Positions 947 through 38,800 of a stretch of DNA of 64,000 nt are shown piece by piece. The stretch comes from Klebsormidium nitens (lineage: Eukaryota > Plantae > Klebsormidiophyceae): the NCBI GenBank assembly GCA_000708835.1, contig DF236957.1:248001-312000 (forward strand), given 5' to 3'. Each line of letters starts with the position of its first letter. Position 1 is the stretch's first letter. A program made the translations under genes and the position numbers. The notes under the pieces are model-generated. The model did not search any database and had not been told where the DNA came from. It saw only the letters and a list, made by a program, of their open reading frames with translations.

Positions 947-1033
947 AGCGGCTGTGAAGAAACAGAATTGTGCGCCCATGCTTCACCGACATGATGCACA
1001 TGTACCTTAAGAAATCGGGAGTCAGATGCCGCT
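947..1033 (+). ncRNA. Array element, candidate K-turn/C-D-like small RNA
   Basis: AGCGGC-TGT-GAAGA ... CAGA-T-GCCGCT. The 6-bp terminal stem AGCGGC/GCCGCT closes the motif. A GTGAGC donor-like motif lies at 924. Confidence 0.45.
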
Positions 1034-3448
1034 CAGTGGGGTTAACAGCCCGTCAAAGGCAACGCGCTCTGAAGTCCTCAATGATTCGTTGTCTGGGTCC
1101 GGAGGCTGAATGCGTTACAACCTGTGCAATTTTCGAGCTATTGCGACCAGCAAAAGTGCCGGCTGCTGCGACACTCGAAGACAACTGGTTCGGTCTCACG
1201 CGGGTTGAAGGCCCGAGGTGAGCTGAAGCTTATGTGATTACATTGGTGCAAGCAATCGAAACCGTGGATACGAGCACGGGTGTACTGAATTGACGTCGTT
1301 CTAAATCTCTGCTCCAGACGCCGTTCGACAAGCTGTGCGCTGAACGTGTCTAGCCCTTAAACAATGCTTTTTCTTGCACGTGCTTGTTGCCCTCGCAGAG
1401 ATCTACTGACGTTCTCTTTCCTGCGCGCTTTGTAAAGGATATTAGCTAAAGCGCGAGAAACTTGAGTCGGTCTCTTGTCCCAAAAAGCGAGGCACTTCAG
1501 ATCGACGGGCCGTGTGAGAACTAGGAGTGGTTGGTGGCTATGATGGGCTGGCCAAAAGCACGAGCTGCGACCCGCTCAAGCACAATCCTCACTTCAGACG
1601 CTCCCGATGCCGTTCAGTAGCTTGCGCACCTTCTTTGCCGCTGCCCTTCATACCTGATCAGTCGCGCTGCTGGCTATCTCCGAGAAATAGCGGGGTCGAG
1701 CTTGATTGCCAGCGTTTGGCAGTACTCATAGTAAAGTTGACACTCATACGGAACCGCCAAACCACCCCTGTCATTTGCCCCCGTTTCATGCGCGGAGGCG
1801 GAATGGAGGCATTGATTACGCCATTCGAGGAGTGGGCTCTGTTTAGGCTCACCCCTCCTTCTCAACCTGTCGGATGCCGCAGCATACAGGGGTTGTTTCG
1901 ATGAAATGTCATCAGCATACAGCTTCTACAAACTTCGCCTTTGGGTACTCAGCGATTACTTGGAACAACTTATCCGCTACGATGCAGCTTTGAGATCCAC
2001 TAATCCACTAGAACACGAGTTCACACGGCCACTCGAGCCTAGCGCCGTATAATGTATTTGACAACTCAAATCTAGATGTATCACGTCTCTCAATGTAGGC
2101 CACGGCCCGTCGGCACCGCGGCTTTGAAGAGGTAAGCACACAAAAGAATTTCTGCCTCGTGGCATGTCCAGCTTTCCTGGTGATCGGATGCCTTTCCTAG
2201 GAGCCAAATCATGCCTGTGTCGCATCCTGGTGTACGAAACATGTCGAAACGGTTGCCTGTTTGGAATCTTTTGCGCGGTTGTGCATCTGGGTCCCCGTCT
2301 GTTTGATAGATGATCTAGATCAAACAAATGAGTGGTCATGTTAGGGCCCAGTTGTATCGCCAGCCCTCCCACGCCTTTTCGTCCTACTGCTCAAGAAGGA
2401 TCTGGCACAACATGCGCGAGCGGCTTCTGCTTTGAGTTTTTAATCGAGCAAGCTTGCCTGAAGACGACTCGGACTTCTCGAGTCACTCCTCAAAAATCTT
2501 CGCATGCACCTAGCTCGAGGTTTCTTTACAGGACTTGAGCGCCCTCTCGGGTTTACAAAGCAACGGTATGCATGAAGCCATCCTGCATCATGACTAAAGC
2601 GCCGAAAAAGTGCCATAAAGCTCGCAGCTATCTCTCAGGTTGTAGCCAGAGTGACCCAGGCCGATTTTCGGGTGCGCGCGCACTCGCCTGCAAGATCCGA
2701 GGGCCGCCCACTTCGCACCGGGCCGAGCCTCACTAGATTACCTGACGCGCGGAAGGGGGAACAGCTCTTCTACTTTCATTTCCCAATGTTCCATGCCCCT
2801 GATCAATCACGTTGCTTGCGTTTAAAACTGTACCACGGGGCTTATCAAAGAATTTGACTTGATGCAAAGACGCCTCGGTAGCTTTACTCGAAGCACTAGG
2901 TCACGGGCCCTTACAAAAAAGACCATGCGCGGCTGATTGAGGGTAGGCGACTGGCGTTGTGACTTTGTACGTAGTTCTCGGCAAGTGTTACAGCAGCTAT
3001 GACGAGACGTGCCTAAAGTCTTGGGCGCGACGTTGCCTAAGCTCTTCTGGGCCGTCCGGATGTTGCGGATAAACCACGGCTGCAGATGGAGCTGACTTTT
3101 GTAGGTACACATATCCTTGCTTATGTCTGGAACACCAAGCGGAGGTTGACTCATTTCATTCAAAAGCATACAATCAATGAGTTACGACCTTGATCGCTTA
3201 AGACAAACCCTGGCAAGTGCATGGCTTACCTTCAAACGACTTCCGGAAGGATCGTCCCGGGTGCCATCGGCGCCGGAAGATGGAACAGCGTTTATACAAG
3301 CATACGATTTTGAAGCTGTACGATTCCTAAGGCCCTGCACTTTTGCGATTGCCCAGTGAAGTCGCTAGCATGATTTGTCAGAGTGCGGGCTGCTACGACT
3401 TAAACGAGGATTCGTCCTTTGCATCCACTTCGTGGGCGGATGGCGCCC

Positions 3449-3526
3449 TGCGGCAGTGAAGACGCGCTTCATGAAGACATGGGCACCGCTTTGCTCAATG
3501 CGCCTCTAGAAGTAACGGATGCCGCA
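3449..3526 (+). ncRNA. Array element, subfamily A (paralog at 4722-4798)
   Basis: TGCGGCA-GTGAAGA ... TGGGCA-ccgctt-TGCTCA ... CGGA-TGCCGCA, with a 7-bp terminal stem. Confidence 0.45.
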
Positions 3527-4127
3527 ACAACAGCACTGTGCACTCCGATTGCGCTGACATCAACTGCAAATGCTTTTAACGTGTAGAGACCTACTGATTA
3601 TCTGTCGAGCTCAATACTTTTAGCGCGAGCTTCTGGTTTCACGGTGTTTGGACTATACTTGTCCAGAATCATGTGACAATTTGAAGTGACGGATCGAGCC
3701 GGGGCGCCCGGCCCGATAACGGCCAGCCCACCTAATCCCCATGCTAGTTTACATCTCACCTAGGCGGTCCGCCCGCTCTGGACGCGGCTTTGAAGAGCTA
3801 CGATGTCACGAGCATTCCTGCGCAGGCAACTTTTTTGTAGCTGATGCCGTGCAGGCCTGAGGGGCCAGAAAAACAAGCCAGATAGAGATGCGGCTTGACG
3901 GCTACGAATGCATTGAAAGCATGGGCACCGATATGTACACTGGTCTCCTGTGGGACGTGCCTAACCTGGGCTTCTCAAGATCATGCATTCGTCTAATGTT
4001 CCATCGGCATCCGGTATTCCGTCGGAGTGTGTTGAGGCCGGGGAGACTTCTCCCGCGTTGGTCACGGGCTGAACAGAAGCGTTCTCATGTAGGGCGACTT
4101 TCAGACTCAAGGTGCGAGATTAAGGTG

Positions 4128-4199
4128 CTGGCTGTGATGATCAAGCGGGAAAGATTGTGAGCAACGTGCTCACCGTGTTTGATAGCGCCTCAGAAGCCC
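4128..4199 (+). ncRNA. Array element, subfamily C (paralog at 7732-7790)
   Basis: GGC-TGTGATGA is a perfect box C (RTGATGA). Internal hairpin GTGAGCA-acg-TGCTCAC, 3' end CAGA-AGCC. GTGCGA donor-like motif at 4112. Confidence 0.45.
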
Positions 4200-7100
4200 T
4201 GCCCACCATGACACCACTCGTACTACTAGTGGTTGGAATTCTTCTTGTTTATTCGCTTGTCTGGCACGCATCCGATTCGATGATTGGGCAAAAGTACTTG
4301 CAGATGGGGTTTTATTTCTTCTCTGGCTCTGATCGCATGGCGCGAATCTTATACAAGTTCGACGGCGACTTGGAGGAACAAAACAGCGGATGTACTGGCA
4401 TGACTAATCTAGTGACCAACGCCGGGCTGTGACGACTTTCGAAGCACGAGCATAGTCTTTGCTCAATAGGCCAAATCTTCTGGTTGCGGAGCTTCTGGTC
4501 CACTTTGCGATTGCGTACCGCATATGGTTGGAAGTTTGTGACATTCGGTCCCGCAAGAATCTGGCGCTTGAAGCTTTTTAAGGAGGCGCCTTCGGGTTGA
4601 AAGTAGTCGCAGCGTTTCAATCTCACTCATGGTGGGCTGTTACCCAACGTGGAAACCTCAATTTTCCCAAGACGACTGCGTCATGTGCTCCATGAATTCG
4701 TACGGTAAGCGGATGGCGCCGGCGGCAATGACGATGCGCTTCCAAACATGGGCGGCACCGCTTCGCTCAAAATTTCTGCGATCGGTTGCCGATGCCGCAA
4801 CATCATAGCGCTCTGCCCCCCGTCAGGCCCTGACGTCAGCCATATCTAGTGGCTACATTAATGACAAACGTTCTGCGAGCTTTGTGTCAAACATGCTTTC
4901 GAACAAGTTTGGCTGCGCAGCTCGTGAACGATGCTTGTGCCGGACACGAAGTGATACATGACAGCTTGAATCGGAGCACCGTTTCATGGTCAGCCCAAGC
5001 TTGACTACATTACACACCACAGCAAAGTCGGCCGCCCACCCGCCGCGCGGCTTTGAAGAGATACAAATGAACACGAGCATTACTAGCGATGCTCAAGCAG
5101 GGATTTTGTAGTCAGATCAGATGCCTTTTAGAGGCTGAATTGCTCCTGTCTTGATTCACGCTGTGCAGCAAGGTATAGTCTAAAAGTTCAATGTCAATTG
5201 CGCCTAGGACATGTGTTGCTTTCTGTCCTCGCCGAATTCGTCTTTCGCAATCGGTTCATTGAATTTCCCCCTGGTTGAGTGGTTCCCACAAGCCAGCCCA
5301 AGGCGCCTCCTTACACTGTTTGTAATTGGTCCACCGCTTGCTCGTGTTTCGCTTCGAGTAACACAAGCAAGCTTTGCTACTCGATCGTCATTTTGGACAT
5401 CGTGTCCTATCAGAGCCGACTTCCAGACGCTGGAACCAGTTCGCTTTGGACTGAGATCAGTCCCATTTGAAGGTCCGGTTGGCAACGCCTGCCTATTCAG
5501 AAGAAATCAGGCGAAAAAAGACTCGAAGGGTAGCAGGACGCTGACTAGAATGAGTGAAACTGGGCGTTTTGAAGCGAGAAGTTCTTGGCAGTCGCATCCG
5601 TTTGTTCGAGCAATTTGCTACTTATTTTGCTACGCAACATCAGCGAAGCAGAAGCGTCTGCGTTCCCACTACCTGTGTCATTAAGAGCCGCTAAATAACA
5701 AGCCACGGCTATGAAATCAGCGTTTGGACTTCGATGGGCTCAGTCGTCCAGCGGAGTGGTTTTTTGGAGCCGCTAAAATCCTTCTTCGAGTAGGTGTACT
5801 TTTGGATTGCCAAGTCGATACACAAACCCGCTGATTGTAGTAGTACTCGACCTTGTCAGTGGGTCTTTTTGGTTTGCCTTCGGTGATCAAATGTTCGAAA
5901 TACTGACTGGAGCTACTTGTCGACAAGTGAGGCCTCAAAACTCTTACGAAAAGACGATTGATCTGCGTGTTCGTCCCGTCATCTGTCTCAAGCAAGGCTG
6001 TTACATATATTCTCAATACCAACGGATCACGCAAGGGGTGCCAGCGGCAATGAAAGCCCACAAGCTGAATTTGAGCATTAGTCTTCGCTCATCCAAGAAC
6101 CAGTGGAGCCGCGCAACTCTCGCGCTTTCTGCGGTGTATCTTGTGTCTCTTCTGGTATGAGTCGTCTTGAGGATGCGGCCTGCCTGTTTCCACGTTTTGG
6201 TGGTACTCGATGAGGCCTTCACCTTTCGGGATTGATGTCGAGACTGAATGAGTTGAGTCCTGGTGCATCGATGCCGGAAACATCGTTTGGCCCAGGTCGA
6301 GGAACTGTGAAAGGGCGCTTTGCCTAAGACGCTTCAAAGGGGGGATGACGTACCCCTGTTCGCTAAAGGCAGTCTGATTAACATCTGGTTCGGCAATATG
6401 GAGACCAGTGCCAATGGGCGGGTTAAACTCAAATCTCTCACCTGCCGTCTTGACATCTAGTGGATCGATCCGCCAAGAGCTTTAAGAAACTAAAAATGAC
6501 ATGCGGCAACAGATGCTAAGCTAGCTACAAATGGATAAAACGGGCTGTGATTTCGCTACATACTGGGCAGTTCTCTGCTCAACAGAATCGTGTCAATACA
6601 TTTTACTGAAAAGGCCGTTAACTCTGTTTTGCAACCGGCTTGCCCTCGACTAGCTTGCCCATGTCTTTGATGTCAAAGTGCGCTGGAAGCGGCCCGGTTC
6701 CTGCCAGTGGCAGGAGTAGTACCTGCCATGGCAATAACAAAAAATACTTCTGTCTCGCCATGCTTGGCAGCGTCACGGTGCCCCCAGAACTCTCGGTAGA
6801 CGAGCTTCAACAGATCGTTCGTTTCAGTACGGGTTGAGAATACTTCTCGTCTGAAAGTGCGCCGATCAAGCGAGTCAGGCAGTGGGCACGGCAGATCGAT
6901 ATATTTTGACGTCTGCTTTCACAGCACTAGCGTTTGAAAATCTTCCTTGGAATCCAGCCCGCTTGTTACCATTTGTTGGATCGTGCTCTCTGGAGCTGCC
7001 TGTGGCGGTCGCCAGCTGACTTTCGAGCCGGCGTCTATAGGCGCTCAGGCCGGGCAATCGGCCTCGACCAGCTGTCCTTCGTGGGCGGTGCACTCTGGTG

Positions 7101-10069
7101 GTCATGACAAAGGCACTTGATAATGAGCTCCTACATTCGCCCAATAGGGTTCCGAGTGAGTCATGGACCGACGCTACTGGAAGAGCATCACGGACTGGCA
7201 AGATCGACACAACTAGATCCGGTTGGTAGTGAGTTTAACGTGATACGTATACACGAAGCTTCGAATCGACGTCTTGGAACTTGGCTGGCCATCTGAGACG
7301 AGTTTTTCCTGATTCGGCACGGCTAGTCGAGGAAGACGACCCTTTCCAGGGTCGGCCACGGAGCGCCTCTTGCCAGCCACGAAAAAGGGCCGAGAGGGAA
7401 GCGCTTTCAGACCTCCAATCAGATTTGAAGGTCTGATCACTCGTTCTTTTTTTCAACTGCATGTTCAAAGAAGCATGATGATAATGTGGCTGAACGGCTA
7501 TGGAGATATCGAAGGCACGGGCACAAGCATGTCCACTGGTCTTCGAGGCTGGACGTGCCAAAACTGAGCTGCTCGAGATCATGCACTCATCTAATGTTCC
7601 GACATAATCGGCCTCCGTTTATTTTCAACAAGGTGCTCGATTCTTGGGAGCCCTCTCCCAACCAGTGGTTTTACAGGCTGGGCAGAAGCCTTCTCACGGA
7701 GGACGTTCAGACGCAAGGTGCGAACTAGGGTGGCGGCTGTGATGCCAAACGGGAGATGATGAGCAGCGTGCTCGGGGGTAAGATGCCGCTGCAGAAGGCC
7801 TGCAGTGCCCACCGGTCGGAGCGGCTGGAACTCCTTTTGAAGGTCACCGGAGAAGCAACGTATTCCGCTTCTAGCTAGGTCCTGCGATTCTAGAAACTCT
7901 AGGATATATGTCTTTGGCATATCTCGTTGGCGGATATTGATTCCGCCATTACCTTGAACCTCATGAACAGAGTAGTAATGAGTGAAAGACCTTTGGCCAC
8001 GTAGACATGAAGGAAGCATTTGACAAATTCTTGCAGCTAGCTGCTGCTTCGAGTGAAGCTATGAAGATTTTTACGTTGTGGGCGGGTGAAGCTCACTTAT
8101 GATCTTAGACGCCGCCTTGTCTCATCGGGCACGCACGTGCATATGCATAAGCTGGTGACGTCATCACTGTGGCGCTTTTCGCCCATCTTTGCGAGTATCA
8201 CGGTCAATCACATGTGTCAAGCGAGTCCTGCCGGTCACTTCCCGCTGTGCTTCTGTCCAAGCAAGCTGTATAATCAGAAGCGCTGGTTCAAATGGTAGGT
8301 GGCTATGCGGTAAACCAACGGCGATACTCAGCTTTCAATCTGGCGAGCAATGTTACGATGTACTTATTGAAGATTGTCAAACCAGCCGCCTAGGCCAAGT
8401 AGCTGCGCGTCAGAACGAACTTTCGTATGGGCCTGTGAAGCTTGGAACGGCTGTCGAAAACCACCGCGAGTCACGCTGCCGGATTCAAGAGAGAGAATGA
8501 GATCACGCTTGCCGCTAGTAGTTCCGGGGCACGCGTACGACCCAACATATCAACAGATCAGAGGCTATGACAAGATATGTGGAAGCGACCATTATTGTGC
8601 TCAGGTCACCCACTCCTAGTCGTCCATTCCTGGATGCCGCAAATCAGAGACGTGCGCTACTCACGATTATACTTAGTCGGCCTCGGCCTTTGTGGTATGT
8701 TCTGGTGCTTAGCTCTCCTTGAATGTGATTCGGAAGCCCACAAAACTGCCTTTGCAACAGAAAAACGTTGCAATCAGGGAGCAGCGCCAATGCGTTATGG
8801 CGGGTATTACCCTTGAGTCAATGAATTCTTTGTAGACCGCAAATCAGAGACTGGGCGATCCATCGCTCGCGGATCATGTGAACGAGAAAGTCTGTTCTGG
8901 GCCCAATTTACCTGCTGCCTGAATTTCGAGTTGCTACATAATATACCGATCTCTTCAGGACCACTCGTTCAGCCCTTAATGCGAATCCAAGGTTGGCATG
9001 CAGAGGGACGTCTACCGATTCTTATCCAGCTTGTGCTTCGTCCGGCGCTGTGAACGTCGTTCTGGCCACTTTACTTGCTTCTGAGCTTGCCCTTTGTTTT
9101 TGTCAGATGCGAGTCCCTGAAACGGCCGTGCTCGAGCAGTCCTTCCATATTGCACTTCATCTGAACACCCACAGGCTGATGCTGCCGCTCGAGCGCTGGT
9201 GCGGCCATCACAAAATGAATTTACGAGCATCTTTCCGCTCAAAGCCGCTTCGTTGTACCCTACCTTTTATGCCGCTCTAGAAGCCCGGGCTGGCTACTCA
9301 AAAACAATGTCGAGATGTGATTGATCTATCATGGGTGCGAATGAAGTTCGAGTTCAGTATCCTTGGCCAGTTGATCGACTCCGTTCAATGCCTGGATCAC
9401 GTAACTTCATACTTCCGTGACGTTGTGGCCCTCTCGTGCTTGAACGTAAATTTCAGCTTGAATTCCATTTCTTGACAATACTATGTGGCATTCAGTCCGA
9501 GCTAGCGGTTTTGATGGCAAGAAACATGGGCGCTCTGCCCAGTCGATCAAGCTCGCTCCCGTCAAAAAAGTGATTGCCGCTTAGAAAGTCGCATGCCGAC
9601 TCGAAACGCTGTTAGTCTGTATCAGGGTCTTCAACCTCGAGTGACGTTCCGGCGGACACAAGCTCTGAGGTTTTTAGGTTACTGAGTATGGGTACATCGA
9701 TCCGCCAGAAAATTGCACTTCTGATAACACATTTTGACAGGTTTGGAGGGCTATTGGATGTGCACCGTGTGCGGATGAACCAGGGTGGGTCCCGTGCCGT
9801 TGCTGATGGAATCTGAGTTGGTCCCGTTCCTCGCTTTTCCTGAGGATCCTGAGAATGCTCCTTCGTATTGTAGGAAGCGCTTTTTGAGCCTCGCATCGGC
9901 TGTAAACCGTTATACTTCTTAGAACGTCCATAAGAAGTTCTTGCTTTCGATCCGAACAATCGCAATGATCGTACCCCCTTCGATCCGGCCGTCTACTTCT
10001 TCTTCCCCTGAAACGGGCAACAGAATAAAAATTGTATATATGGGCAGCATGACGTGTGCATATGACCTT

Positions 10070-10083: not shown

Positions 10084-11940
10084 GGTCAAAGAAGAAGCAT
10101 TTCAGACACGGCAAAGACGAGAGAAGATTCTAATTTATCAGTTTTGAAGACGAAATTATACGCCGCCGTACTCTTCAACATGGGCGGACCGCCCTGCCTA
10201 GCTAGCTAGGCGGCAAGGATGGGCTTAACATTTGGGGACGTGGCTCATTCAGCTAACCCATCACATTCAGAGCCGCCCAATATCTTACACACAGACACTG
10301 GCACGCAATCATTCAACGCTGTGACTCGTGGATTCGAACCTTTTATTTGTCTTGATCGGCTTCCCCAGCTCTCTGTTTGGAGATTTTGACAGCCCAGGCG
10401 GTGTCTGGATCATAAACGCTTGTTAACGGGTGCTGCAAAACCAGGGTGCCTTTCGTCTCCACTTTCCCCGTGCCCTGCTGCTTGATTCAGATGAAGCGCT
10501 GTAAAATGTATATATTGTGCTCCCCACACTTTTCGATGAAAGGGTGTCTTGTCCTCAACTTTGGCATATCTACCGTCCAAACGTCGTGCTTCAGTCCTCT
10601 TCGCCTTTTCCACGTGGTTATACGAACCGGCCTCGAGTGTCTATCGTGCAAGGCCGTTCATCTCTCTCGTAACGCTTTGACAAAAGCCGAACTTGAAGGG
10701 GCAGGTATTAGCTCACGCAGTTACGAAATGGCTGTGATGTAACAAAACCTGAGCAGCATCCTGCTTACGTTAACTTGGTGGTCTCTAGATGCCGGTTCAC
10801 AGAAACTCTTTTCGAAACCTAAGCTAGCTTCCAAAACGCCACTTCGATGATTCTCAGCTGCTCAACTCCGTCAACTCGGTGTCCTTATTTTCGAGCCAGC
10901 TTTTTGCTTGCCTTTCGTTGATCCATCCAATATTCGGGAGTGAAAAAGCGGGAGTGAAACATTCGGTCCCGCGTTTGCCCAAAATGGTTTCGATGCACAC
11001 AGGAACAAATCTAAGATTGTGGCTGCTTATAACCAGGCCGATTACCCAGACCTGAGTCTTAGGTTATCCAACCCAATGTTTTGGCTGGGTACCGCCCAAA
11101 TCTGGTTACTGGACATATGACCAGTTTCTAGCCAGCCCATAAAACAGCCCAACGCCATTCATAATGAAGGGTCAGAAATCTTTCGTGATCCTTGGAAGTA
11201 ACTGGTGCTCGAAGCCCAACCGGCTCGGAAATGCTTGCGCGGCCAGGATGACAATTGCGCGTGTCTGGACCGTTTTCTCAGATCGGAGGTGGTTGCGCAG
11301 ACGCTGCGGTTCGAGAAAACTTGACCACCGAGGAACAGTTAGTACTGTGATCGGACGGATGCATGTCAGGAATCTCGACCTACTTCGTCCACTGATATCG
11401 CTTGCGCGCTAATCTGCTGTATGAGCTGTAGCACGCGGCTATAATAAAGCTCTCGGCAAGTAAGAATATGGATCAGGTCGAATCCATTTGCCACTTTTTC
11501 GACTCGGCCTGTGACATTACTCTTTGCAGAAGGGCGTACGATGCTCCTTGCTTATTTAGAAATGTTCTTGTTGCCCCCTCGGAGCACGTACCAATGAGGA
11601 CCAATCAAAGCCACTTACAAATGATGGGCGAACCTCAATGCGAACAGCGCTGGCGGAACGCGCAATCTCGGCTGACGGACAAGCGGCCACTGACTGTCAC
11701 CATTTTGTCAGCGTCGAGAATGACGGCTTCGATTCGACGTTCTTCGGATCCGAGATCGAGAGCCGGGGACCAAACTTACGATTCTTACGATTCTGGTCCT
11801 AGTTGCTAAGAGCTAACGCCCCAACAGACTTTTTGAGCCTGTGGACTCTTTGGCTGAATATCACTAGAACGGCTGTGACAGCGTCGCGGCCATTCATCGA
11901 GATGTGCGTTCTGTCACGTTCTGTCTGCTCAAGCTCCGTT

Positions 11941-13475: not shown

Positions 13476-13546
13476 AGCGGCGATGATGAGCAAGATAGAC
13501 GAGTTTTCTTCTGCTCAACTCCGGGGGCTTGTCACTTGGATGCCGC
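13476..13546 (+). ncRNA. Array element with canonical box C
   Basis: AGCGGC-GATGATGA-GCA ... TGCTCA ... TGGA-T-GCCGC. Confidence 0.45.
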
Positions 13547-20400: not shown

Positions 20401-20528
20401 CTTGAGATTTGCTCAGTGTGAGGGCCTCGGTCCTTTGAAGCTGCACATGGTGTGGCCCTCGTCGCGCAAACGGTACTCTGATGGCACTTCGCACGTCGCG
20501 GACTATCACATGGACCTTCTCTGCGAAG

Positions 20529-26350: not shown

Positions 26351-27937
26351 GCCTCCAACTCAGGGGCAACAAATGACTCGTTACAGCAAAAACCGTCACA
26401 TGGGCTTTTGGCAGACTGTTGCATTGCATCGAAGCCAGCTAGTTACTCGTGGTTGTGAGGGCGCTTGCGAAACGAGCGTACCGTCAGCTCGTCGGCCCTG
26501 ATTGAAACTTGCGACTGTGCGGACGTCTTTTCCAACTTTTCACAAACCCGTTCAGTCCTTTCTTTTGTTCGTCGGTTACCTACAAAGGAGGCCTTTAAGG
26601 CACCAGTTCTATAGCCGGCCGCAGATTTATTACCAATTTCTCTTCGGGCCCTCTTCCCGTCTTGTGATGCAGTCGTGGTGAGCACATGATATACGTTGTG
26701 CCAGACGGTGTCCCCCGGGCGGGGTTGGCTTGGTGGTTAGGGTGGGTTCAATGGGGTGCGTAGCGCGTAGGTTTTTAGGTTAGGGTTTTTCGTTTGGTTG
26801 CTCGGGGTCTACTAATCTTAGGGCACAATGCTGCAAGGGCACACGAGAGTTGCCATTATTTTGCCACGGCGGAGTCCTAAGCCGATCTCAGCTTGGGCTC
26901 AATCAGGACGAAAAATATTGCGGCATTTTTAAAACGGATCCTTCTGTTGGTGATGATGATTGGATCCCCGGGCTAGTGGCTCAGGTCTGGTACGGTGTAA
27001 CTATTTTACGGAACCAACGCCCGTGAAACCCCGTTCTTAAGTCTTGAATCAAGCACAATGAACACACTCGGTTTTACCTGAAAAGGCTCTCGACTTCTTT
27101 CTCGCTTACTTCTCAGTGGAGGCTTTAAATTAAGTGGCTTCTGGCATACTTGCAAAAGGGTTGCTGCTTCGAGAGCACTCCAATGGTTGGAGACAGATGC
27201 CGCGTGTTTTAGTCCATGTGAAGCGGTCACGCTACGCGCCAAGAAGATCATGATTGAGTTGCAGACTGTATCAATTGAGGACTGGGCACTGCCCTCGTGA
27301 TCACAGGAAGTTGGTTTAAAGGAGGCTTAAGGAGAAAGCTTATATCAATCTTCTCACTCAACGCCTGTGATTTGCGTTTTTTCCAATACTACCTGGCCGA
27401 TAGCATCGTTGGAAGACTCTTGTCTTGGTGATGACGGATGTATCTTTGATCGAGCAAGTGGTTCAAGCCTTGATGTAAATGGTTTTGTTACGGAACCAAA
27501 GGCGCGAGACCCGCAGTCATATGTGACTAACAGTAATAGACAATATTATGATACGCATATTGGCTTCCTTCTTTTTTTCCCTTCATTAGAGTGCCCAAAC
27601 AATGTATAAAATCCGTTATTCCTATCGATTGACAACTTGTGTACGCCATCTGTTACAGTCAAGACTACCTTGAATGTGCCCTCACCCATTACTCATACTT
27701 CACAGTTCGTGCAGAATACTGCGACCGGGCCAGGATGCAATCGGTTCTGGACGGGGGCTTAGACACAAATGAGCAGCGCAACGTCATCAGAAGCCCCTCC
27801 GAGACTGCTTTCCATTCCCGGGCTTTCCTCCCGGCTACTCGCGGATTAGTCGAAGTGCAAAACTTTCTGAGCACTTTCAAACGCAGAAGCATGTGACGGA
27901 TGTGAATTTGTGTCGCTCCGCGAGGATGACGCTCGCT

Positions 27938-28015
27938 GGCGGCTATGAAGAGCTTTCTTGACGCGAGCAAGCTCTTGCTCAGGATGGGGTTTTCCACTGT
28001 GACTCAGACGCTGCT
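27938..28015 (+). ncRNA. Array element, subfamily G (paralogs 29751, 31382, 34891; related 20370, 25672)
   Basis: GGCGGC-TATGAAGAGC ... GAGCAAG-ct-CTTGCTC ... CAGA-C-GCTGCT. Confidence 0.45.
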
Positions 28016-31000
28016 CAATGTTGGTTGTGTACTCGTCCCGCAAATAGCGCTTTTGCGGGCAGTTCTTCGTGGGCATTCTCGTGGACATTACGGAAGAAAG
28101 CCGTTGTGCAACTGTAAGGTCAAGCCGCCAAAGTGTGAATGGGGGCTCAAATTTGTTCGGGAGTAACAAAACTCTTGGAGGGAAGTCCTGCTCAACATCT
28201 TGGACGCGTCTCTAGGAGCCAAAGCAACGGACACGCCACCCGTTAGCCGAATCCCAAGCTCCGTCTGATCCGTCACTCGGTGCCAAGCTCATTGAAGTGA
28301 AAGTCAAACTTCCTGCCCAAAAGCTTAGAAACCAGTTCGAGAAGAAAAGTGAAGATGACAATCTTATGTTTGCCGTGCGTGTCTTTATCATTCTAGTATC
28401 TTCAAGCTTAGATACGCCGCGAGCTGGAACCGCCACAAAATTGGTAATCGCACAGAAAGGCTTGGCTGCTAACCAGGTTCGAGAACCAAACTTCAGTCTG
28501 GCACTTTGACCAATAACCGCGTTATAGCCATGTTTAAAACCTGGTAACTGCTCGAGTCTGGTCCTTGGACAGTCACGGTTAACCAGATTCGAAACAGCCC
28601 GTAACCGAATGTGGTTAACCGCCAAAAACTCCTGTGATATCGAGAGTTTATGATGAGCATGGTGTTTGAGCACGTCGTTCAGATGGGCACCGCTCATATA
28701 TCTTTTCTCGAATAAACACATGGTTATAAATACAAGAGTTCCATGCTTTCTGTTCTGCTGCTTAGTGGCGGCTATGAAGACTCTGAATGTTGGGCGAATG
28801 AACAAGGCATCTTGAAAAGCGCCCATCTGGTCCATGCAGAGACTTGACGCCTTTTGACTGGGCTTCCCAGGATTGAACGCTAAATTCGTTGCTTACCAAT
28901 CTAGAATCTGCAAGACCTACGCGCCTGAAAGAATGTGAAAAGAGACTGCTCCCGGCGGTAGTCTTTTTCAAAAGCCTTTCCATGATGTTCTTCGTTTTCA
29001 CCGACAGACTAATGAAACGCTACTCGGCGGCTATGATGCGACTCATCTTATCGCTTCCGACCCCATGCCACGTGACCTTGTAGGATTAGACTCTCCAACT
29101 CATTTTCATTTTATTCCTTAAAGTCCGTATAGCCCGTAGCTACTTGGAAGGAGCTACTTGGAAGGAGTTTCCGTACTAAGAGCCTTCATCAAGCCAACAT
29201 GCTGTCGTCGACGAACTCTGGATAATTACTCCATTGGCCAGGTAATAATCAGTAGTCTGCCTTGATTCTCTCCAGACCATCCAGTTGCAACCATCTGCTA
29301 CTTGTCCGAATCTTCCTCTGATTCCTCGTCCCAGAGGTCCTCGAGAGTTGAGCACACGCCAGATTGGAAAATACGGCATGAAAATATTCAGCCAAACTGC
29401 CCAAAGACAAAGACGGCTGAAAGTCTGCCAAGGAGCTGTTGTTGGAATCCACCCCTTCAACAGGTGCGAGTCTCCTGGCTTTAAGGTCAGGTAGACAAGT
29501 ACGTATAGCCGCCGGCTGGGATGAGTCTAATTGTCCGCGGCGCTAGTTCGATTGAAAGCCGGGCTCCCGAGAGTATTCAGAAGCCGTTTTTCGAACGTTT
29601 CCGAGTATAAGTGATATTTGCCGAGCAGCACACCGGATTTCTGATCGGTCGTTCGTCGGTGTGAATTCCGCGTACTGGAGCACTTCCGCAAGCAGAAAGT
29701 CGTAGGAAATGCGTGTTTATCTCCGTTGCTCGGCCTAGATTGCGCTCGCAAGCGGCTGTGAAGAGCTCTCCTACATGAGCAGCCCCTTGCTCAGCGAACT
29801 CTTCAGGATTCTATGACGCTGCACGCTGATCAACATTGTGTAGGACTGGTACTGACGCAATTGAGGCTTTGATGGCAATCAGCACTTCGCGGACTCTCAC
29901 ATGGATGTTACCGAAGGAAGCGGTTGAGGTGCAAGTAATAGGCCCCAGAAGTGTAAGCACACCGCGTCAGAGCCCATTCTCCAGAAACGAAACGTCTTTC
30001 TTTCTTCTCTACTAGCCAGCTTACTCTGCGAGTGCTTAATCGTGGCGTAGTTTTCCAGGAGGCGCTCAGCAGAGATTCCCGCTGCGAATCCCAAAATAAC
30101 ATTGTGTATATCTTACTAGTGTTGCGTCCAGAAAGGTACGTACCGATGTTGCCGAGCCGCTTACGGATGACAATCTTGATGAATCAACGGAGGGTATGAT
30201 TTGCTCGCCGGAAACTTTAGGAACCAGGTCCATGAAGACAAGCGGAGATGGTACTGGATTCAAGCATCTGATGTCTGTCGAATTGTCTTCACTTTCTCAG
30301 TGCCTTGGATTCTAGAGCTCTCCGAAAGGCTCGCAATTCTCGTAGTCGAGCGGTTAGGATGAGCCGGGTGTCTTGAAACGGCAGTCTCTCTGATAGGCAC
30401 TGCTTACAAGCCTTATCTCAGATGAGCACGTGGCTCACGAATAAGCCGAATCCCCATGCTTTCCCATTTGCTGCTTGTTGCCGGCTATGGCGGTTGTGGA
30501 TGTTGGGCCAGATATACAAAAGTGCCCAGCTTCGCCCCACGAAAACGGACGCCTTCTGACTGGGTTAATCTCAGTAATGAACGTCAAAGCTCTTGTTTAC
30601 TTTTAATCTCACGAGACTTATGCGTCTAAAGAGCTCTAAATGAAAGCGCTTTCGGCGGCCCAGTGAGAAGCCTTCACAAGGTTTCCTTTTGTTCAATGAC
30701 GCGATGCTGCGTGAGTTGGCGCCATGATGCATCCTTGGCAAGATTCTCGCTTCCGATTCCGACCAATATTGCTTGCAAAGCAGATCCTTCGCTTCAAAAT
30801 TTTTCAATTTGTCAAATTCAGGCATCCGGTTGTTTCGAATCAGCGCCCGAGCCTCTGAAGCTCTAGGCAAACCTGTTGCCCTCGCAATAATTCAGCGTTA
30901 AGCCCGGCTGCCCACTTCATTGCAAGCAGTCGGCCGTACTGTTCTGCAGAATTTTTTGCGCCGGGTACACATATCCACATTCGGCTCTGAGTTCCGAGGC

Positions 31001-32189
31001 GAGCACATGTTGATTGTAACTACGCCATTGCGAACGGTATCAAAACGTGATCAAGCTGCCCGACGACGAATTGGCTGAAGTCCGGAAGCTTTGTTTATTG
31101 AAAGCAGTTTTCTCCTAAAACGCTTATATATAATGAGGGCCAAACATCGACTGACTTGGGCGACCCTCGGGACACTGAGAACTGAGGGACGAGTTGGTCC
31201 AAAAGAAGGTCATCGGAAACGGTTTCCTGAGAATAACAAGTGGTAGCTGTAGGCAGTCTCCGAATATTCGATGGTCCTCGTCAGCGGCTTTAGTGCCTAA
31301 TATCTGAGCACTTACGAACGCCGACTAAAGCCAGATACGCCGCTTTTATCTTTACCGTCGCCGGGCTTACATAGGACTTACCAGCGGCTATGAAAAGCTC
31401 CGCTTTCAAATACGAGCATTCGTTGGCTCAATACATGGTGTCTCGGAGCGATGAAGCTGCTGATCCACGCCTTGTAGGACTCGTTATGTTTTCGGACTTT
31501 CCTTGCACTTCGTGCGTCGCAGACCCTCACATGGACGTTCATTTCCGAAAGAAGCCAAAAATTGGCAGTTGTACGTTTGAGCCGACACTGGCACGCGTTC
31601 CACACAAATGCTCTGGCTCAAATGTCATGTCTTTCTCCTTATACCTTCTAAGAATCCCGCTACTCTGCGACTGCTTATCCTCGGCTTTTCTTTCCAAATC
31701 GTCAGGCATTGACCGCGGTTTAAGATTCTCGCAGCTTTTTGTAGCACCCTCGTGGCGTTCTTCGATTTCGCCAGCGCAGCTGGTTTCCGAGAAAAGCTTC
31801 GTGCTCTTATCATGGTCAAGAACTGATTAGATTGTTACTTACCGTGACGGCGAGCGCTTGTGACCCAACAGATCCTTGGTCCTGTCAGTAACAATTTACG
31901 GCCTACACGACCCCCTGCTATCCCAACTATTCGAAGCTGCTTATTCTCGTACATCACTCGATGGATTCATAGGGGGTTCCCCTGCTTCAACACCCATGAT
32001 TTCTTGTCTTTCAGGATATAGGCAATGACGCGCGGGATTTTGGGCATGAGCAGACACACGAAACGCTCATTTTCATCTCGTAGATGACCGCACGTACCAA
32101 GAAGGAGCCGCTTACGAACGACAATCTCGCAAAACTGAGGGTGTCCGCACTGAGCGCATACGGGCGTCGACCAGCGTATCGTGTTGATC

Positions 32190-32300
32190 GCCAACAGACC
32201 TGCCGCCGGCCGCGCGGCCCGCCGCCCGCTTGGGGAGTGTGCGCGGCCGCGACTCGTGCGGCGCAGGAGACTGGCCTAGCGGGCCGCCAGCTGGGTGCCT
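32190..32300. repeat. GC-rich multi-hairpin block (copy 4)
   Basis: Follows E element 32019-32112. Confidence 0.5.
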
Positions 32301-33912
32301 TTGACTTCTATATAGAAGACACGGTGTGCATTCGGGCTGACGACAGGTTATAATTCTGTCGTCGAAGATTCCATCGACTACGTGTAAGCGCTCACAAAAC
32401 AAGTTCCGGCCGTTACCGTCCTTTAGGTCGGTCCTCACGTTCTGACTATATTGCCGCTTGCCGCGGTGCCATGACTCCTGACTTGAAGAGTCAATTGTCC
32501 GCTTAATCGTCAAATCATTCTTCACGAAGACGTTAAGACTAGTACTAGAAAATACTTTGTCAGCCCCCGAGCTAATTTTCCCCCAGTTTCAAGCCCTGCA
32601 GTCAAATCGTAGCTCAGTCGCGAACGCACATGACCCGAGCGAGGGCCAGCGAAGAGGTCCCGCTTTTCGACCGTTGCGACCTTTGAGCCGATTGCAGCGT
32701 CTTTCCGGGCTGCTGAAGAGTCCGCCGGCGGAAGTGCTTTTACGGAGCGGGAATTACAGCGCCCGGCGCGCGCGTAGGAAGCACGGACGCGCGCTCGGAT
32801 TGCCAGTGCGTTATGACCAAAACCGCCTGTGCGACTCTGAGGAACATGGCGCTTCGGGAGATCAAAAGTAAAAGTCTTCCACTGATATTCGTACGAACAT
32901 AAAGGTCTGCTTTTCTGGAAAAAATCCAACTGCAGGCACGGGGCGAAGAGGGAAAGTAGCGGCCGTGACGAAAAATAGTCCTGACGAGCAACCGTCTCCT
33001 CATGGAAGACGCCCCCTCCTTTTTCAACCAATGCCATATGCCCTTTCTATTGCCTCTGTGCCGCTAATTGTTTGCCGTTCACGTTTAAGCGTACAAAAAT
33101 CGAAGGACTGTACGAAGAAACGCGCAAAAGTCGAGACTACAATAGAGCTTGGTCAATGTCTAGTGCAGAAATCTGGCGTTCGTTTGACACACTGTTTCTG
33201 GGCTGACCGGCCTAGTTCTCTAACCTTTCTGGCTGTTGGAAGCTTCATCTTTGATAGGACTCGATTTTCAGCGCAGTACGTGCCGAATCTTCACTTCCCG
33301 GCTCGTTCGGGTACCCTTCACTCAGATGCACGCTCCCCTCTGCCTTGCAAAATAAAACTGAGGAGTCGAAAAACACGGAGCGGTGTGGGAAGCCCTGTAA
33401 TTGAATGTTCACATTCAACTTGAGCAGCAATATAGTTAAGTGACGTCTCGCTCGATAGCCCTTGTCTGCCCTCTCCACCATATTTGCTCTAAACAACAAG
33501 TCGAGGCCAGCCGACTACGTTCGAAGAGACCATTACGATAGAAAAGGGGCTTACGAAAGTAGAGTCCAGCATCTGACGTCCGCCCAACGTGTCATAATAT
33601 CTGACCTCGGATCTTATCCTTGTTCCAAGCTGGACCGACTCATAAAAATACTAATGTTTGGGGGGATGGCTTTATACTGGAAGAAAACCAGCGTGCTCTT
33701 GCTATCACCCTTTATTTGCGTACGTAATAGCATCTTCAAAGAGCCTTGCTCTTTCGATAACGTACATATTCTTGGCCGGCAAGTAGCTCAGGTCTCATCT
33801 GGAGAAGCGTCACGGAACGTACGCCGCGAGACCCGCCGTGAGGTTGATTCTTACACAACCATAACATGCTTCACGGAAAGGCTCTCGCCTTCTTTCTCGT
33901 CTCCTTGTCAGT

Positions 33913-34001
33913 GGCGGCCTTGAAGAATGTCGCTTTTGGGCACACTCCCAGGGTATTATTGCCCAGATGTGTTTGTTTATTGTCTGGAATCAGATGCCGC
34001 T
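33913..34001 (+). ncRNA. Array element, subfamily F (paralogs 22239, 24648, 27118)
   Basis: GGCGGC-CTTGAAGA ... TGGGCA-loop-TGCCCA (compensatory G-C variant of the hairpin) ... CAGA-T-GCCGCT. Confidence 0.45.
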
Positions 34002-34665: not shown

Positions 34666-34732
34666 GGGCTAGGATGCAATTCGGTTCTGGGCGATAAGGA
34701 TAACCCAGCAGGGAACGTCATATGAGAAGCCC
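34666..34732 (+). ncRNA. Array element, subfamily D (paralogs 20130, 25443, 27727)
   Basis: GGGCT-AGGATGC ... CTGGG-loop-CCCAG ... GAGA-AGCCC. The terminal stem has covaried to GGGCT/AGCCC. Confidence 0.4.
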
Positions 34733-35522
34733 CTCCATGTATACTCCCGACTGCCGGGCAGCCTCTTGGATCCTCGTACTGGTCGTCGGTGCAGTTCAAT
34801 ACTCGTATAAGTCCTCCCGGATGCGGGAGGGCCTGTCTGCCGCGCGCGCTTGTAGACATTGCCATTCCTAGGCTTGGAATACACTCGCTTAGCGGCTGTC
34901 AGGAGCTTTTGACACATGAGCAAGCTTTTGCTTACTGAATTTGGGTTCTCTTGGCCCCATGACGCTGCTCAACATTGCCCAGTACTAGCCGAGCGAACTT
35001 GACTTCGAGGTCGCGCATTTGCGCACGAAGTGACGGATGGAAGCCAATCTTTAGAACGGTATGTTCATGCCGCCAGAGTGCATGGCCCGTCAAAATAGTG
35101 CAGTCTCAGAAGAGGGGATTTTCTCCGCTTGTTCGCGCCACCTTTTATGTCACCATCGCAACTCTTTCAGGTTTCTAACCAGCGCAGCTGGGCAGCGCAG
35201 CTGGTTGCAAATAAGCGGATGAGGCTAATGTTTGTACTTGCCATATTTGCAAACGTCTTTCTTGAAGGGAATCGCTCCTAAACATTCATGTTTTCATTGC
35301 CCCCTTCGATTCCAATATGCTTTCGACGACTCCCGATGAATCCGATCACTAGCAGAAGAGGCTTGCGGTATCGATGCCTTCGATTCCCAGAACCACTCAT
35401 CAACACATGTACAGGGCTTGAGATGATATTCCCAGAGATGCGTGAGCCGATTTCAGAAGTCACCAATCATGACACATTTCAGATTGACAGACACGATATG
35501 TCTTCGTCTTTCAAATTAAGAT

Positions 35523-35611
35523 AGCGGCGATGACGCAAGATGACTCTGGCATGAGCAAAAATGTTTGACGCGCACAAGGGCAGAACGAACGTACCAACGA
35601 AAAGAGCCGCT
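35523..35611 (+). ncRNA. Array element, subfamily E (paralogs 18990, 21502, 26015, 32019)
   Basis: AGCGGC-GATGACG ... GGCATGAGC ... AAGA-GCCGCT, followed by a GC-rich block. Confidence 0.4.
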
Positions 35612-35634
35612 TACAGATCGCAATTCGGCAAAAG

Positions 35635-35860
35635 GCGGGCCGCCGTCATGAGCGCACGCGCCCGCGGCCGCGTACGGTGCCGCAACCACCTCCGTACCGC
35701 GGGCCCGCGGCCGAGAGTTCGAGGCCGCGCCGCGTACGCTGCCGGTAATGATGAGTGGGCCAAACCCGCGCGCCGGCCCGCGGCCGGGGATTCGCGACAG
35801 CGAGGAAGGCGACGGCTGCGGTTAAAAGACACGTGCGGAGCCGGCTCAGCGAGCCGCATG
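35635..35860. repeat. GC-rich multi-hairpin block (copy 5)
   Basis: Follows E element 35523-35611. Local hairpins CCGCGTACGG/CCGTACCGCGG and CGCGGCC/GGCCGCG. Confidence 0.55.
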
Positions 35861-38800
35861 CGTGCCTTTGACTCCTGTAGAACGAAGATTGCAGTTGGGC
35901 TGCCTGCAGGGGATCAAAGAGTTGCAGAAGAGACTCTGAGGTTTGGGTGAGCGTTTGCAGAACGGACGACCGACACGTTGGCCCTTTTCACTACTAGTCC
36001 GGATTGAGAACCGCCGCTTGCTCGCTAGTGCGACGCAGTCGCTTCCAACTTCTCAGGATTCGATGACTCTATTTCGTCGTTCAACGTCTATTCAACGGGC
36101 GTACGTCGAAACCCAGTTCTTTAGCTGCGGGTCAGTGGCAAGCCCTCTACCGGCCAAATTGTACGTGCTCGCGTTTATTGCGGAACGCGAGGTCTACAGT
36201 GTATCTTCCCCCGTTGAATATGTGTTCGTCGGCAACATTCTTTTCGAGCTAAGAGCAGTATGCAAAGTTTACTGCGCTGCTAAAGGTTCCGCCTTGCGAA
36301 GAGAGTCTTCCGAGCTGAATCGGCATGGTAGCATCGTAGGGGGCCGGCAGGCGCGCGCGCCCAATCTAGAAAGCACGGGCGTCCAATGGACTGCTGGGGT
36401 GACGGGATCAAAGGTCGCACGGCTCCGTCACCCTTTGAAACAATGGGAACTGATCTTCACTAGTCGTCATAGTATATATAGTACATCCCCACTTTAACTA
36501 AGTTTGATCTCTTGGTCTAGCTTTGACCGTCTGTTTTCGGAATAAGCGACGCGCCTCCAGGGGCGAAGACTCTGGCGGCTGTGACGAAGAACAGTACTGA
36601 GGAGTAAATCGCGTCTCCTCACCGCTGTACAGTTATCCTTTCAGTGCCGAAGCTGTCTGCGCAGCTGTGATCACTGTGGCTGCGCCGCGCGCTGACTTTT
36701 CTCCGGTCAGACTAGGTGTGCAAACAGTGATGGACTGAACGAAGATTGTTTCTGCTGATCAGCAGATACAGAGTGTATGGGGATCATGCGGCCGATGCAC
36801 ATAATTGCTTTCTGGCCGCGTAGTTTCATGATTCTGTTATGGCCGTCTTTGAGCCCCAACGATCTCTGCAGACGCAAGCTCATCGTTCGAGGGGGTTCTT
36901 GCGTCAGCGCGCAGCACGATGCACTAACCCTCACTTGACTCCAAGTAGGAAGTGGTCAACAGGACGTTTCTTGGTTTGGCGATTAGCGTCTCTTTAAAGG
37001 CGGCTCAGACGCAACGCTTTCGTTTTCTTCGATTGCCTGTGATGGCATTGGGTCCTGAGCAGGCCGAAAGTCGACCCACAAAAAGCAAGAAGTCTCTCCG
37101 GAAATCTTGCTTGGTATTGTTGCTTAGTTCTGTGCTCGCCATCGGTCTTTTGCCGTCGCAAGCAGATTTCCTTCGACAATGCTCAATCGAAAAATGCACC
37201 TCTGACCGCGACCAGAGGTGCAATTCCTGCAAACTGGAAAGTCAACCGAAGTAATCGACCGTCAGGATGGTGTCTTGGATTTATGCAGCGAAGCAAGACA
37301 TTCCAAATCCATCCTGTCAAGTACCTAATCACTCCCCTGGAGCTGCTGTCTAAAGATTTCTCAACGTCGTACAATCCGCGTGTCTTGCAGGTTTCAGCAA
37401 TATGAAGCCTTGTGCAAAATCAAAGGACGAGAACACTTTGCAGCCTGCATACAAGCACAGCTTACGCAAGGCAAGAGAACTCAATCAGGAAGTACCCTCC
37501 TGAAGCGGATCAGGGGCTAACACGGAGTGAGTTTTGTTTTGTGTGATAGTTATGCTCGGATCTAGGTATCAGATGGGTCGAGCAAGCGGCCTCTCAACAG
37601 TTACTGTAGGGTAGCTACAATAGGCGTCGAAAGAATAAAGGAGATTATCTGCACACGGATCAAGCGTACGATTGGTATCCGAGCGACTCAAACTGTTTAG
37701 TATATGCTTTTAAATCCTCAGTCTTATCGGCCATCTTGTCGCAAGTCGCTGTCCGCCTTTGTTGTACATCTCGTTCGATCAATTGGGTACAGGCCGTGTT
37801 CAGACACCATCAAGTGCATGATCTGACATGCAGAAGGCTGTTGCACCCGTCCACATCACTGTGAAATTAACGTACGGACCATTTGAATGCGCGATCGCTC
37901 CGAAGCAGTCGTTGCAATAAGTGCGTATAAGCGCTGTTAGTAATGAGATGAATCCTCGTGCTAGCGGTAGTCCGCTTCGCCTTTCAAGGTGATCACTAAG
38001 ACGTTAGCTAGACAACACATGCCGCTGCATGATTCATGCTTGTATGACTACTTCGCCTTATGGCAATCATTGTTTCTGCCGGTCCACCACATGCAGGGTG
38101 TGCTTATATAGGCATCTGGCCCATGCACTGGGATGTCGCAGTCGAGTTGAAAGAATGAACACATGAAAGGCATCTCGTGGGTGCTGAAGTATACATTTGA
38201 AAACTTGCCACAGCGGGCACGCCAGGATAGTATTGTAACTCACCATAAGCTCGCAGTGCGCCGCCGGTCGGACGGCGGCGATCGTCCAACAGCGTGTGTG
38301 TATACAGGAATATTGGGCAACAACCGGAGAGACGCGCACTCATTCCAGTCATGCATATTGATGTACAGTAGCGTGTTCAGTTCCGGAGCTAGGTCCTCAA
38401 GTTGGACTCTGTTATGTTGCAGTTTCGAGCATATGCATAAGCTAGCGCTACTAGGCTCACTGAGGCGGCATGCATTGTGTCAAACTCCATGTAAGAATCA
38501 TACTATAACGCATCGTGGGAGGGTTATTGCGTCCAGCCTGCATGTGACAATTAGTATATATGGCGCATGCTCAATAAAACACGCAATATGAACGTTGATT
38601 CATGACTTCCAAGTCGAGTCCGCGCTTGTATGTACTGTACATGTGCGCAAAGGGTTGGATCATCGGATCTTCTCTTTGTACGATGTCATCGTTGCATATA
38701 CACAGGAATGATCGGAAGCTGTGCCTCAATGATTTTCAACGAATGTGCCTCGATCATGCCAATGGCTTCGTCACTGGTTAGCGGCCGCCCTAAGCTTGAT

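Follow-up and report, generated by a model that had tools for sequence, protein, structure and literature searches.

The first 37 kb of a 64,000-nucleotide (nt) stretch of the genome of the streptophyte alga Klebsormidium nitens (contig DF236957.1, positions 248,001 to 312,000, hereafter referred to as the window) contain many short elements that share a terminal stem of the type GCGGC/GCYGC, a GA dinucleotide at a near-fixed distance from each arm of the stem, and an internal hairpin. The question raised by this locus is whether these elements encode structured RNAs, and if so of what kind, or are the remnants of a DNA repeat. A preliminary description, made from the sequence alone, had listed 20 copies and proposed that selection acts on a single-stranded fold of the + strand. 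Our analysis suggests that the segment from 485 to 36656 is a tandemly grown, strand-locked array of orphan RNA units resembling box C/D small nucleolar RNAs (snoRNAs), each with a kink-turn and derived from a long precursor, a reading to which we assign a probability of roughly 0.7. In box C/D snoRNAs, the terminal stem and the C and D boxes fold into a kink-turn that is bound by the protein Snu13/15.5K.

Extent and anatomy of the array

A first covariance model, trained on 12 well-formed copies and with 5 bp in the terminal stem and 6 bp in the hairpin, yielded 42 matches, of which 41 were located on the + strand, all of them inside the segment 485 to 36656. A second model, trained on these matches and run without filters, identified 40 units at E-values up to 0.02 in the 64-kb window, all of which were on the + strand and together spanned 485 to 36656; at the same threshold, no units were found on the − strand or in the region from 37 to 64 kb. 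Noise, in the form of matches on both strands, set in only from an E-value of about 0.3. Furthermore, the exact pattern GCGGC-N3-GA-N45-75-GA-N-GCYGC was present 10 times on the + strand and 0 times on the − strand, with a chance expectation of 0.12. The array on the + strand thus contains at least 40 secure units and about 10 to 15 weaker or degenerate ones, giving a total of approximately 40 to 55. The secure units are 57 to 93 nt long and the unit-to-unit spacing ranges from 240 to 3,100 bp.

A loose scan for any 5-bp stem followed by N3 and GA, and closed by GA and the other arm of the stem, was useless, with 253 hits on the + strand and 252 on the − strand. A tightened scan gave 29 hits on the + strand versus 10 on the − strand inside the array, as compared with 11 versus 14 outside of it, and the excess on the + strand consisted almost entirely of the GCGGC family. 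The hairpin motif is by itself symmetric, and its matches on the two strands coincide.

The window has few long open reading frames (ORFs) and a G+C content of about 50%. A scan of the window for transfer RNA genes found none, and a Pfam search with eight of the nine ORFs of at least 150 amino acids (aa) in the first 37 kb found no family; the DNA between the units has no recognisable coding sequence. The unit flanks had an information content of about zero from positions −100 to +60, and no promoter, terminator or splice signal was seen there. It was also noted that T is more frequent than A on the + strand nearly throughout positions 1 to 37000 (AT skew −0.002 to −0.11), with a GC skew of about zero. 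The AT skew over the array could be a trace of a transcription-linked mutation bias.

Read from 5' to 3', a unit starts with GCGGC and the C-box-like sequence N-R-U-G-A-N-G-A, followed by 10 to 18 variable bases and a Y. The middle part consists of GRGCA, a loop of 3 to 23 bases and UGCYC, which together form a 5-bp hairpin, and then an A. The 3' end contains another 16 to 30 variable bases, the D-box-like sequence N-N-G-A, one base and GCYGC. The internal hairpin was also predicted independently by RNAalifold.

Column counts and spacings are here given for 41 aligned + strand copies. The 5' G and A were located 3 nt past the stem in 37 and 40 of the copies, respectively, and the triplet that separates them from the stem was present in 14 different versions. 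The spacing rule of the preliminary description, according to which the GA in most copies stays in place even when the triplet varies, is thus true for 37 to 40 of the aligned copies and fails in the copy at 12487. In columns 7 to 13, which represent the C box, R was found in 35, U in 37, G in 37 and A in 40 copies, followed by a free fifth position (U 16, A 14, C 10), G in 32 and A in 28. The units contain a C box of the RUGAUGA type, with the fifth position free, near the 5' end, and the C and D boxes are joined by a short terminal stem of 5 bp, in which 89.7% of the cells in the alignment were paired; both are features by which box C/D snoRNAs are recognised. In the D-box-like part, the G was present in 34 and the A in 33 of the 41 copies.

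The 5' strand of the unit fits the layout of a kink-turn, with a stem, 3 nt and GA, and the 3' strand has GA and an extra base before the stem. In 21 units, the G at position 6 of the C box has a C or U opposite it in the D-box-like part. An extension of the terminal stem by a sixth pair, formed by the two bases that adjoin its arms on the inner side, was rejected, since the 14 pairs observed equal the 14 expected. A K-loop reading of the internal hairpin was likewise rejected, given that its 3' arm has no GA for sheared pairs and that pair 3 covaries as a Watson-Crick pair, as was a hammerhead reading of UGANGA, in which the base before the U is R and not C.

In a subset of the units (3784, 2993, 28768, 31384, 4128, 20370 and others), the variable bases that follow the C box are complementary to those that follow the hairpin, as exemplified by AGCUAC/GUAGCU in unit 3784. 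Cognate pairs of variable stretches were slightly more stable than non-cognate pairs (permutation p = 0.019), but the effect is weak, and most units lack it. Where it occurs, the putative guide regions would be enclosed in a long irregular stem.

Covariation and strand polarity of the stems

The pairwise identity of the aligned copies was 76% in the 29 motif columns versus 32% in the 45 other filled columns, where random sequences would give 25%. The spacers have few short repeats in common. Since the motif columns have been kept while the surrounding DNA is near saturation, neutral decay cannot explain the motifs of the array.

In total, 89.5% of the stem cells were paired, as compared with 85.7 ± 0.6% in shuffles and 29% to 48% with slid partners. 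Double changes were observed in 15 cells versus 6.0 ± 2.1 in shuffles, and none of 500 shuffles reached 15. They affected 6 of the 11 pairs and were mostly located at hairpin pair 3 and terminal-stem pair 3. In the 41 + strand copies, hairpin pair 3 was A-U in 21, G.U in 9, G-C in 6 and A.C in none, and the C on the 3' side was opposite a G in 6 of 6 cases (Fisher p = 0.0026). The corresponding numbers for terminal-stem pair 3 were 28 G-C, 10 G.U, 2 A-U and 1 A.C. Clean double changes were identified in the hairpin of unit 36575 (C-G to G-C), in the stems of units 20370 and 2993 (G-C to A-U), and between the paralogues 3450 and 4722 in a duplicated two-unit block (A-U to G-C). The compensatory changes that had been reported for both stems are thus real, but thinner than implied and mainly confined to two pairs; the covariation signal is small and involves few positions.

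The mismatches carry information about the strand. Over all stem cells, we counted 37 G.U or U.G and 16 A.C or C.A mismatches, with 13 of the latter 16 at the outermost position of the hairpin. This outermost "pair", in which T or C is opposite A (C.A in 13 copies), is probably not a pair. When it was excluded, the numbers were 36 G.U or U.G versus 3 A.C or C.A (binomial p of about 4e-8 if the cells are independent). Symmetric decay of a palindrome would generate as many A.C as G.U mismatches, and the observed ratio of 36:3 therefore indicates that the sequences have been filtered for pairing in + strand RNA; for − strand RNA or a DNA palindrome, the ratio would be the opposite or even. The stems and boxes are under purifying selection on the fold of a + strand RNA, and the rest of the unit is near saturation. 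This agrees with two proposals in the preliminary description, namely that the G.U-type variants have a + strand polarity and that selection acts on a single-stranded fold of this strand, the latter borne out by the orientation of 40 of 40 units, the difference in identity between motif and other columns, the test on hairpin pair 3 and the double change between the paralogues 3450 and 4722. A full explanation by C-to-T decay of a palindromic ancestor, which had been named as one outcome that would overturn the proposal, is contradicted by the same ratio.

The frequent series G-C, G.U and A-U is also compatible with GC-to-AT decay under a filter of RNA pairing, and its direction is ambiguous. 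A tree inferred from 52 non-stem columns was a star, with support for 1 of 37 inner branches, and changes in pair state on this tree were about as frequent as with shuffled labels. With paralogous copies and a star tree, the independence of the pair changes is neither supported nor removed, and independence of the double changes is plausible.

The proposed precursor RNA and its rivals

The anatomy and the selection pattern are read from the aligned copies, and from these we infer transcription, protein binding and processing along the following lines. The region would be transcribed as one long + strand precursor; the individual units lack promoter and terminator motifs. In this precursor, each 5-bp terminal stem would unite the C-box-like NRUGANGA with the D-box-like NNGA to form a kink-turn with tandem G.A/A.G pairs. 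Snu13/15.5K would bind to each kink-turn and recruit Nop58, Nop56 and fibrillarin, and exonucleases would trim each unit to its protected terminal stem. The hairpin, which takes the place of the C'/D' motif, may hold the spacing or a second protein set, and the variable stretches may serve as antisense (guide) parts with targets that are non-ribosomal or absent. The suggestion in the preliminary description to probe the fold with L7Ae is only loosely apt, as the eukaryotic counterpart would be Snu13/15.5K.

Several observations weigh against this reading. The D-box-like part is degenerate, with C in 15 and U in 14 of the 41 copies at positions 1 and 2 of a box that is canonically CUGA, and the 3' GA is set off from the stem by one extra base in 38 of 39 copies with a base at this position. 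No internal C'/D' boxes were identified, and their position is occupied by the Watson-Crick hairpin GRGCA/UGCYC. The folding energy was only mildly better than in shuffles, with mean z values of −0.86 and −0.70 and the two strands alike. A search against Rfam 15 gave 0 matches at gathering scores and, at E-values up to 5, two weak matches located off the units (24586 to 24645 on the − strand and 12147 to 12285 on the + strand). None of 24 sequencing runs with the same species label contained words of window positions 1 to 6000, and a comparison of the contigs of four runs with positions 27500 to 33400 revealed no array transcript, only an approximately 90% similar piece from elsewhere. These expression data are assembled contigs of unrecorded library type, for which RNA is a guess, and small non-polyadenylated RNAs are easily missed in them. 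Finally, the complementarity of the variable stretches to eight eukaryotic ribosomal DNA (rDNA) units was no greater than in shuffled and sense-strand controls; the longest complementarities were 9 to 12 nt, with the same distribution as in the controls. The panel consisted of unrelated protists, and only short green-algal pieces could be retrieved. The units are called orphans because no ribosomal RNA (rRNA) target was found as far as testable, and the label holds within the limit of this panel.

Could the units instead be ordinary box C/D snoRNAs that guide the methylation of rRNA or small nuclear RNA (snRNA), with targets that escaped notice for lack of the rRNA and snRNA sequences of the alga itself? 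The units look like such guides in their C box, terminal stem and cluster layout, and the foreign origin of the rDNA panel leaves room for them. However, the complementarities do not exceed those of the controls, no Rfam snoRNA family was matched, close paralogues differ freely in the "guide" stretches, unlike true rRNA guides, and at least 40 extra guides in one block are far above the need of the known rRNA sites. We consider this explanation quite improbable. A slightly better case, although still an unlikely one, can be made for modules of a long non-coding RNA that is never cut, in which sites for a protein of the Snu13/L7Ae family and the GAGCA/UGCUC hairpin would serve as a scaffold, sponge or retention signal. 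The missing C'/D' boxes, the degenerate D box and the failure to find targets in the rDNA panel are consistent with such modules, and the preservation of the hairpin in both sequence and pairing suggests a reader protein. The pairing between variable stretches in a subset of the units, which would shut the guide, adds weak support but is missing in most units. Furthermore, a short terminal stem flanking the boxes is a hallmark of units that are trimmed by exonucleases, and no long transcript was seen in the contigs compared.

An explanation without RNA, as a decaying tandem repeat or DNA palindrome that represents protein-binding or recombination sites or remnants eroded by C-to-T changes, was judged to be very improbable. 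It is true that GCGGC...GCCGC and GAGCA...TGCTC are inverted repeats, that the variation consists mostly of GC-to-AT transitions along the series G-C, G.U and A-U, that no transcript was seen in the contigs compared and that the folding energy is equal on both strands. Yet a palindrome has no strand, and 40 of 40 units face the same way and have kept the asymmetric C-box and D-box parts as well. Symmetric decay predicts equal numbers of G.U and A.C mismatches and not 36 versus 3, and decay alone is insufficient to leave 5-bp motifs that are 76% identical amid near-random DNA. Nor does it account for the transversion double change in unit 36575 and the A-U to G-C double change in unit 4722.

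The array of orphan box C/D-like units may be compared with three known systems. In plants, most snoRNA genes are located in polycistronic clusters whose members are released from a common precursor, and both plants and mammals are known to have orphan snoRNAs (PMC2875012). The box C/D clusters in Arabidopsis, rice and Chlamydomonas resemble the Klebsormidium array in having short units on the same strand without their own promoters, a C box, a D box and a 4- to 5-bp terminal stem, and in that they grow by tandem duplication and include pseudo-units (PMC2875012). However, such clusters usually consist of 2 to 10 genes that are 100 to 300 bp apart and mostly have identifiable rRNA targets and belong to recognisable families, whereas the Klebsormidium array contains 40 to 55 units over 36 kb, with no Rfam match and no rRNA complementarity found, a degenerate D box and a hairpin in the place of C'/D'. 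We found no paper on snoRNA arrays in Klebsormidium.

The second system is that of the imprinted mammalian orphan box C/D snoRNA arrays, which are also mentioned in PMC2875012. The SNORD115 and SNORD116 arrays in the SNURF-SNRPN region and the SNORD113/114 arrays are similar in that tens of orphan C/D units are arranged in tandem on the same strand of a long non-coding region and lack an rRNA target. They differ from the Klebsormidium units, the identity of which is near random outside the motifs. The copies in the mammalian arrays are near-identical, including the antisense element, have canonical C, D, C' and D' boxes and are located in introns of a host transcript. The third system is the kink-turn bound by the L7Ae family (Snu13/15.5K, L7Ae and SBP2), with which the units share a stem, 3 unpaired bases and GA/GA at fixed spacing; the sequence of the bulge is free, as is also seen from the 14 triplets. 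They differ by the extra unpaired base between the 3' GA and the stem of the putative Klebsormidium kink-turn.

If the array is expressed, a streptophyte alga with a position near the origin of land plants would contain giant orphan box C/D-like arrays in parallel to the mammalian SNORD115/116 arrays, the function of which is still debated. The design of the units also bears on the mechanistic question of whether a single kink-turn is enough for the assembly of a C/D particle when a plain hairpin replaces C'/D'. A more speculative and rather unlikely proposal is that the units represent a lineage-specific class of kink-turn RNAs, defined by the C/D-like kink-turn and the GAGCA/UGCUC hairpin, which may provide a fast-changing repertoire of non-ribosomal guides or decoys against mRNAs, transposons or other non-coding RNAs, or else that the long transcript may bind Snu13 and fibrillarin as a multivalent scaffold.

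Individual units, array growth and neighbouring features

The secure units are listed here along the + strand, with bit scores from the second covariance model. The first part of the array contains units at 485 to 550 (30.1 bits, E 1.6e-4), with a weak 3' stem; 948 to 1032 (25.7 bits, E 0.0015), which is an exact match to the pattern and has an internal hairpin that differs from that of the family; 1534 to 1604 (38.0 bits, E 2.5e-6); 1806 to 1880 (31.6 bits, E 6.9e-5); and 2118 to 2194 (21.9 bits, E 0.011), with a degenerate 3' half. In the segment from 2993 to 5127, seven units are placed at a spacing of about 300 to 460 bp. These are located at 2993 to 3066 (32.8 bits), with the terminal stem GCAGC/GTTGC and the hairpin TGGGCG/TGCCTA; 3450 to 3525 (48.1 bits) and 3784 to 3850 (40.1 bits), which were identified by block alignment as paralogues of 4722 and 5047, respectively; 4128 to 4200 (37.1 bits), with the shorter terminal stem GGC/GCC; 4424 to 4495 (34.6 bits); 4722 to 4798 (46.7 bits), with the hairpin TGGGCG/CGCTCA that shows a double change relative to 3450; and 5047 to 5127 (42.9 bits).

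Further downstream follow units at 6044 to 6112 (32.6 bits), 6541 to 6617 (21.8 bits, E 0.011, weak terminal stem), 7494 to 7552 (30.3 bits), 7733 to 7789 (34.0 bits), which is only 57 nt long, 8055 to 8115 (25.6 bits), 8561 to 8640 (36.4 bits), 9201 to 9275 (33.2 bits), in which the C box is damaged (CATCAC), 9505 to 9580 (28.7 bits, hairpin TGGGCG/TGCCCA), 10210 to 10276 (27.9 bits) and 10728 to 10795 (38.7 bits). The units at 13477 to 13546 (40.7 bits) and 14644 to 14707 (35.1 bits) are both exact matches to the pattern, and are followed by those at 17768 to 17839 (38.0 bits), 18213 to 18282 (30.2 bits), 20370 to 20444 (37.1 bits), in which the terminal stem GCAGC/GCTGC represents a G-C to A-U double change, 22240 to 22323 (26.4 bits, hairpin TGGGCA/TGCCCA), 23255 to 23325 (29.0 bits), 23848 to 23917 (38.5 bits) and 25673 to 25739 (32.4 bits, C box damaged).

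The last part of the array contains a unit of the GGCATGAGCGAAC subfamily at 26016 to 26108 (21.3 bits, E 0.015), three units with a G.U pair in the terminal stem at 27939 to 28014 (52.6 bits), 29752 to 29822 (51.2 bits) and 31384 to 31460 (43.5 bits), a unit at 28768 to 28853 (23.7 bits) with the hairpin TGGGCG/CGCCCA, and one at 29512 to 29587 (21.4 bits, E 0.015) without the family hairpin. These are followed by 33914 to 34000 (32.0 bits, hairpin TGGGCA/TGCCCA), 34892 to 34968 (39.7 bits) and the last unit at 36575 to 36656 (29.8 bits), the hairpin of which, TGAGGAG/CTCCTCA, contains the C-G to G-C transversion double change.

Among the weaker units on the + strand, those at 11239 to 11307 (15.7 bits, E 0.28, exact end pattern) and 14907 to 14987 (14.3 bits) have good ends and no family hairpin. 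The units at 18991 to 19082 (14.1 bits, hairpin TGAGCG/CGCTCA) and 21503 to 21609 (10.0 bits), the latter of which is 107 nt long, belong to the GGCATGAGCGAAC subfamily, the unit at 30481 to 30555 (11.9 bits) has the hairpin TGGGC/GCCCA, and the unit at 35524 to 35610 (10.4 bits) belongs to a GGCATGAGC subfamily. A degenerate unit at 12487 to 12569 with the ends GTGGC/GCCAC, in which the 5' GA is not located 3 nt from the stem, was not found by either model.

Four additional copies on the + strand, located at 20129 to 20206, 25443 to 25514, 27727 to 27798 and 34666 to 34734 (9.4 bits with the second model), represent a second family with the structure GGGY-AGGATGCA ... CAGAAGCCCC, followed by CTC. 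In contrast to the main family, the stretches in the guide position are preserved, with GCAATTCGGTTCTGG following the C box and GAACGTCAT preceding the D box, which raises the possibility of a real, conserved target. No match to these stretches was found in the foreign eukaryotic rDNA panel.

The 20 copies listed in the preliminary description can be placed against this census. The stem and hairpin variants quoted for them are present, with most coordinates offset by one base because the base before GCGGC had been counted. The covariance model recovered 13 of the 20 at E-values up to 0.02 and 4 as weak matches (11239, 18990, 30489 and 34666), and missed 3. The copies at 25443 and 27727 do not belong to the main family but, together with 34666, to the separate four-copy family with a GGGC/GCCC stem, and the stem quoted as GGGCT/AGCCC at 27727 is actually GGGCC/AGCCC, with a mismatch at the fifth pair. 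The third copy missed is the degenerate unit at 12487.

The block from 3400 to 3880 aligns with that from 4672 to 5130, each of which contains two units and a spacer (3450 and 3784, 4722 and 5047), giving a period of about 1.27 kb; the homology ends after the second unit. A block of at least two units has thus been duplicated within the segment from 3400 to 5130, and the whole array has presumably grown in this way. Two other repeats are located in the largest unit-free gap of the array. One is a 235-nt segment present twice on the + strand, at 15043 to 15277 and 17073 to 17307 (2,030 bp apart, 97% identity), and the other is a 65-nt segment present at 16984 to 17048 and 17358 to 17422 (374 bp apart, 92% identity). 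They have the appearance of a short element that has recently been inserted or duplicated, and this element contains a TGACGTC site as well as an 8-bp inverted repeat (TCGCTCTC/GAGAGCGA).

Contig pieces of 59 to 123 nt from three sequencing runs aligned to positions 28451 to 28636 with about 90% similarity and continued into unrelated sequence, which points to an expressed relative of this segment elsewhere in the genome. The segment overlaps with a 207-aa ORF on the − strand (28212 to 28835) without a Pfam family. Beyond the array, a block with a G+C content of about 63% contains an uninterrupted ORF of 912 aa on the − strand (39947 to 42685), which is read towards the 3' end of the array. 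This ORF encodes a C-terminal glutaredoxin domain (PF00462, E 8.7e-13), and its other 830 residues have no Pfam family. Finally, tandem repeats were identified at 16505 to 16589 (2.7 copies of 32 nt, 84% matches) and 52149 to 52263 (3.5 copies of 33 nt, 96% matches).

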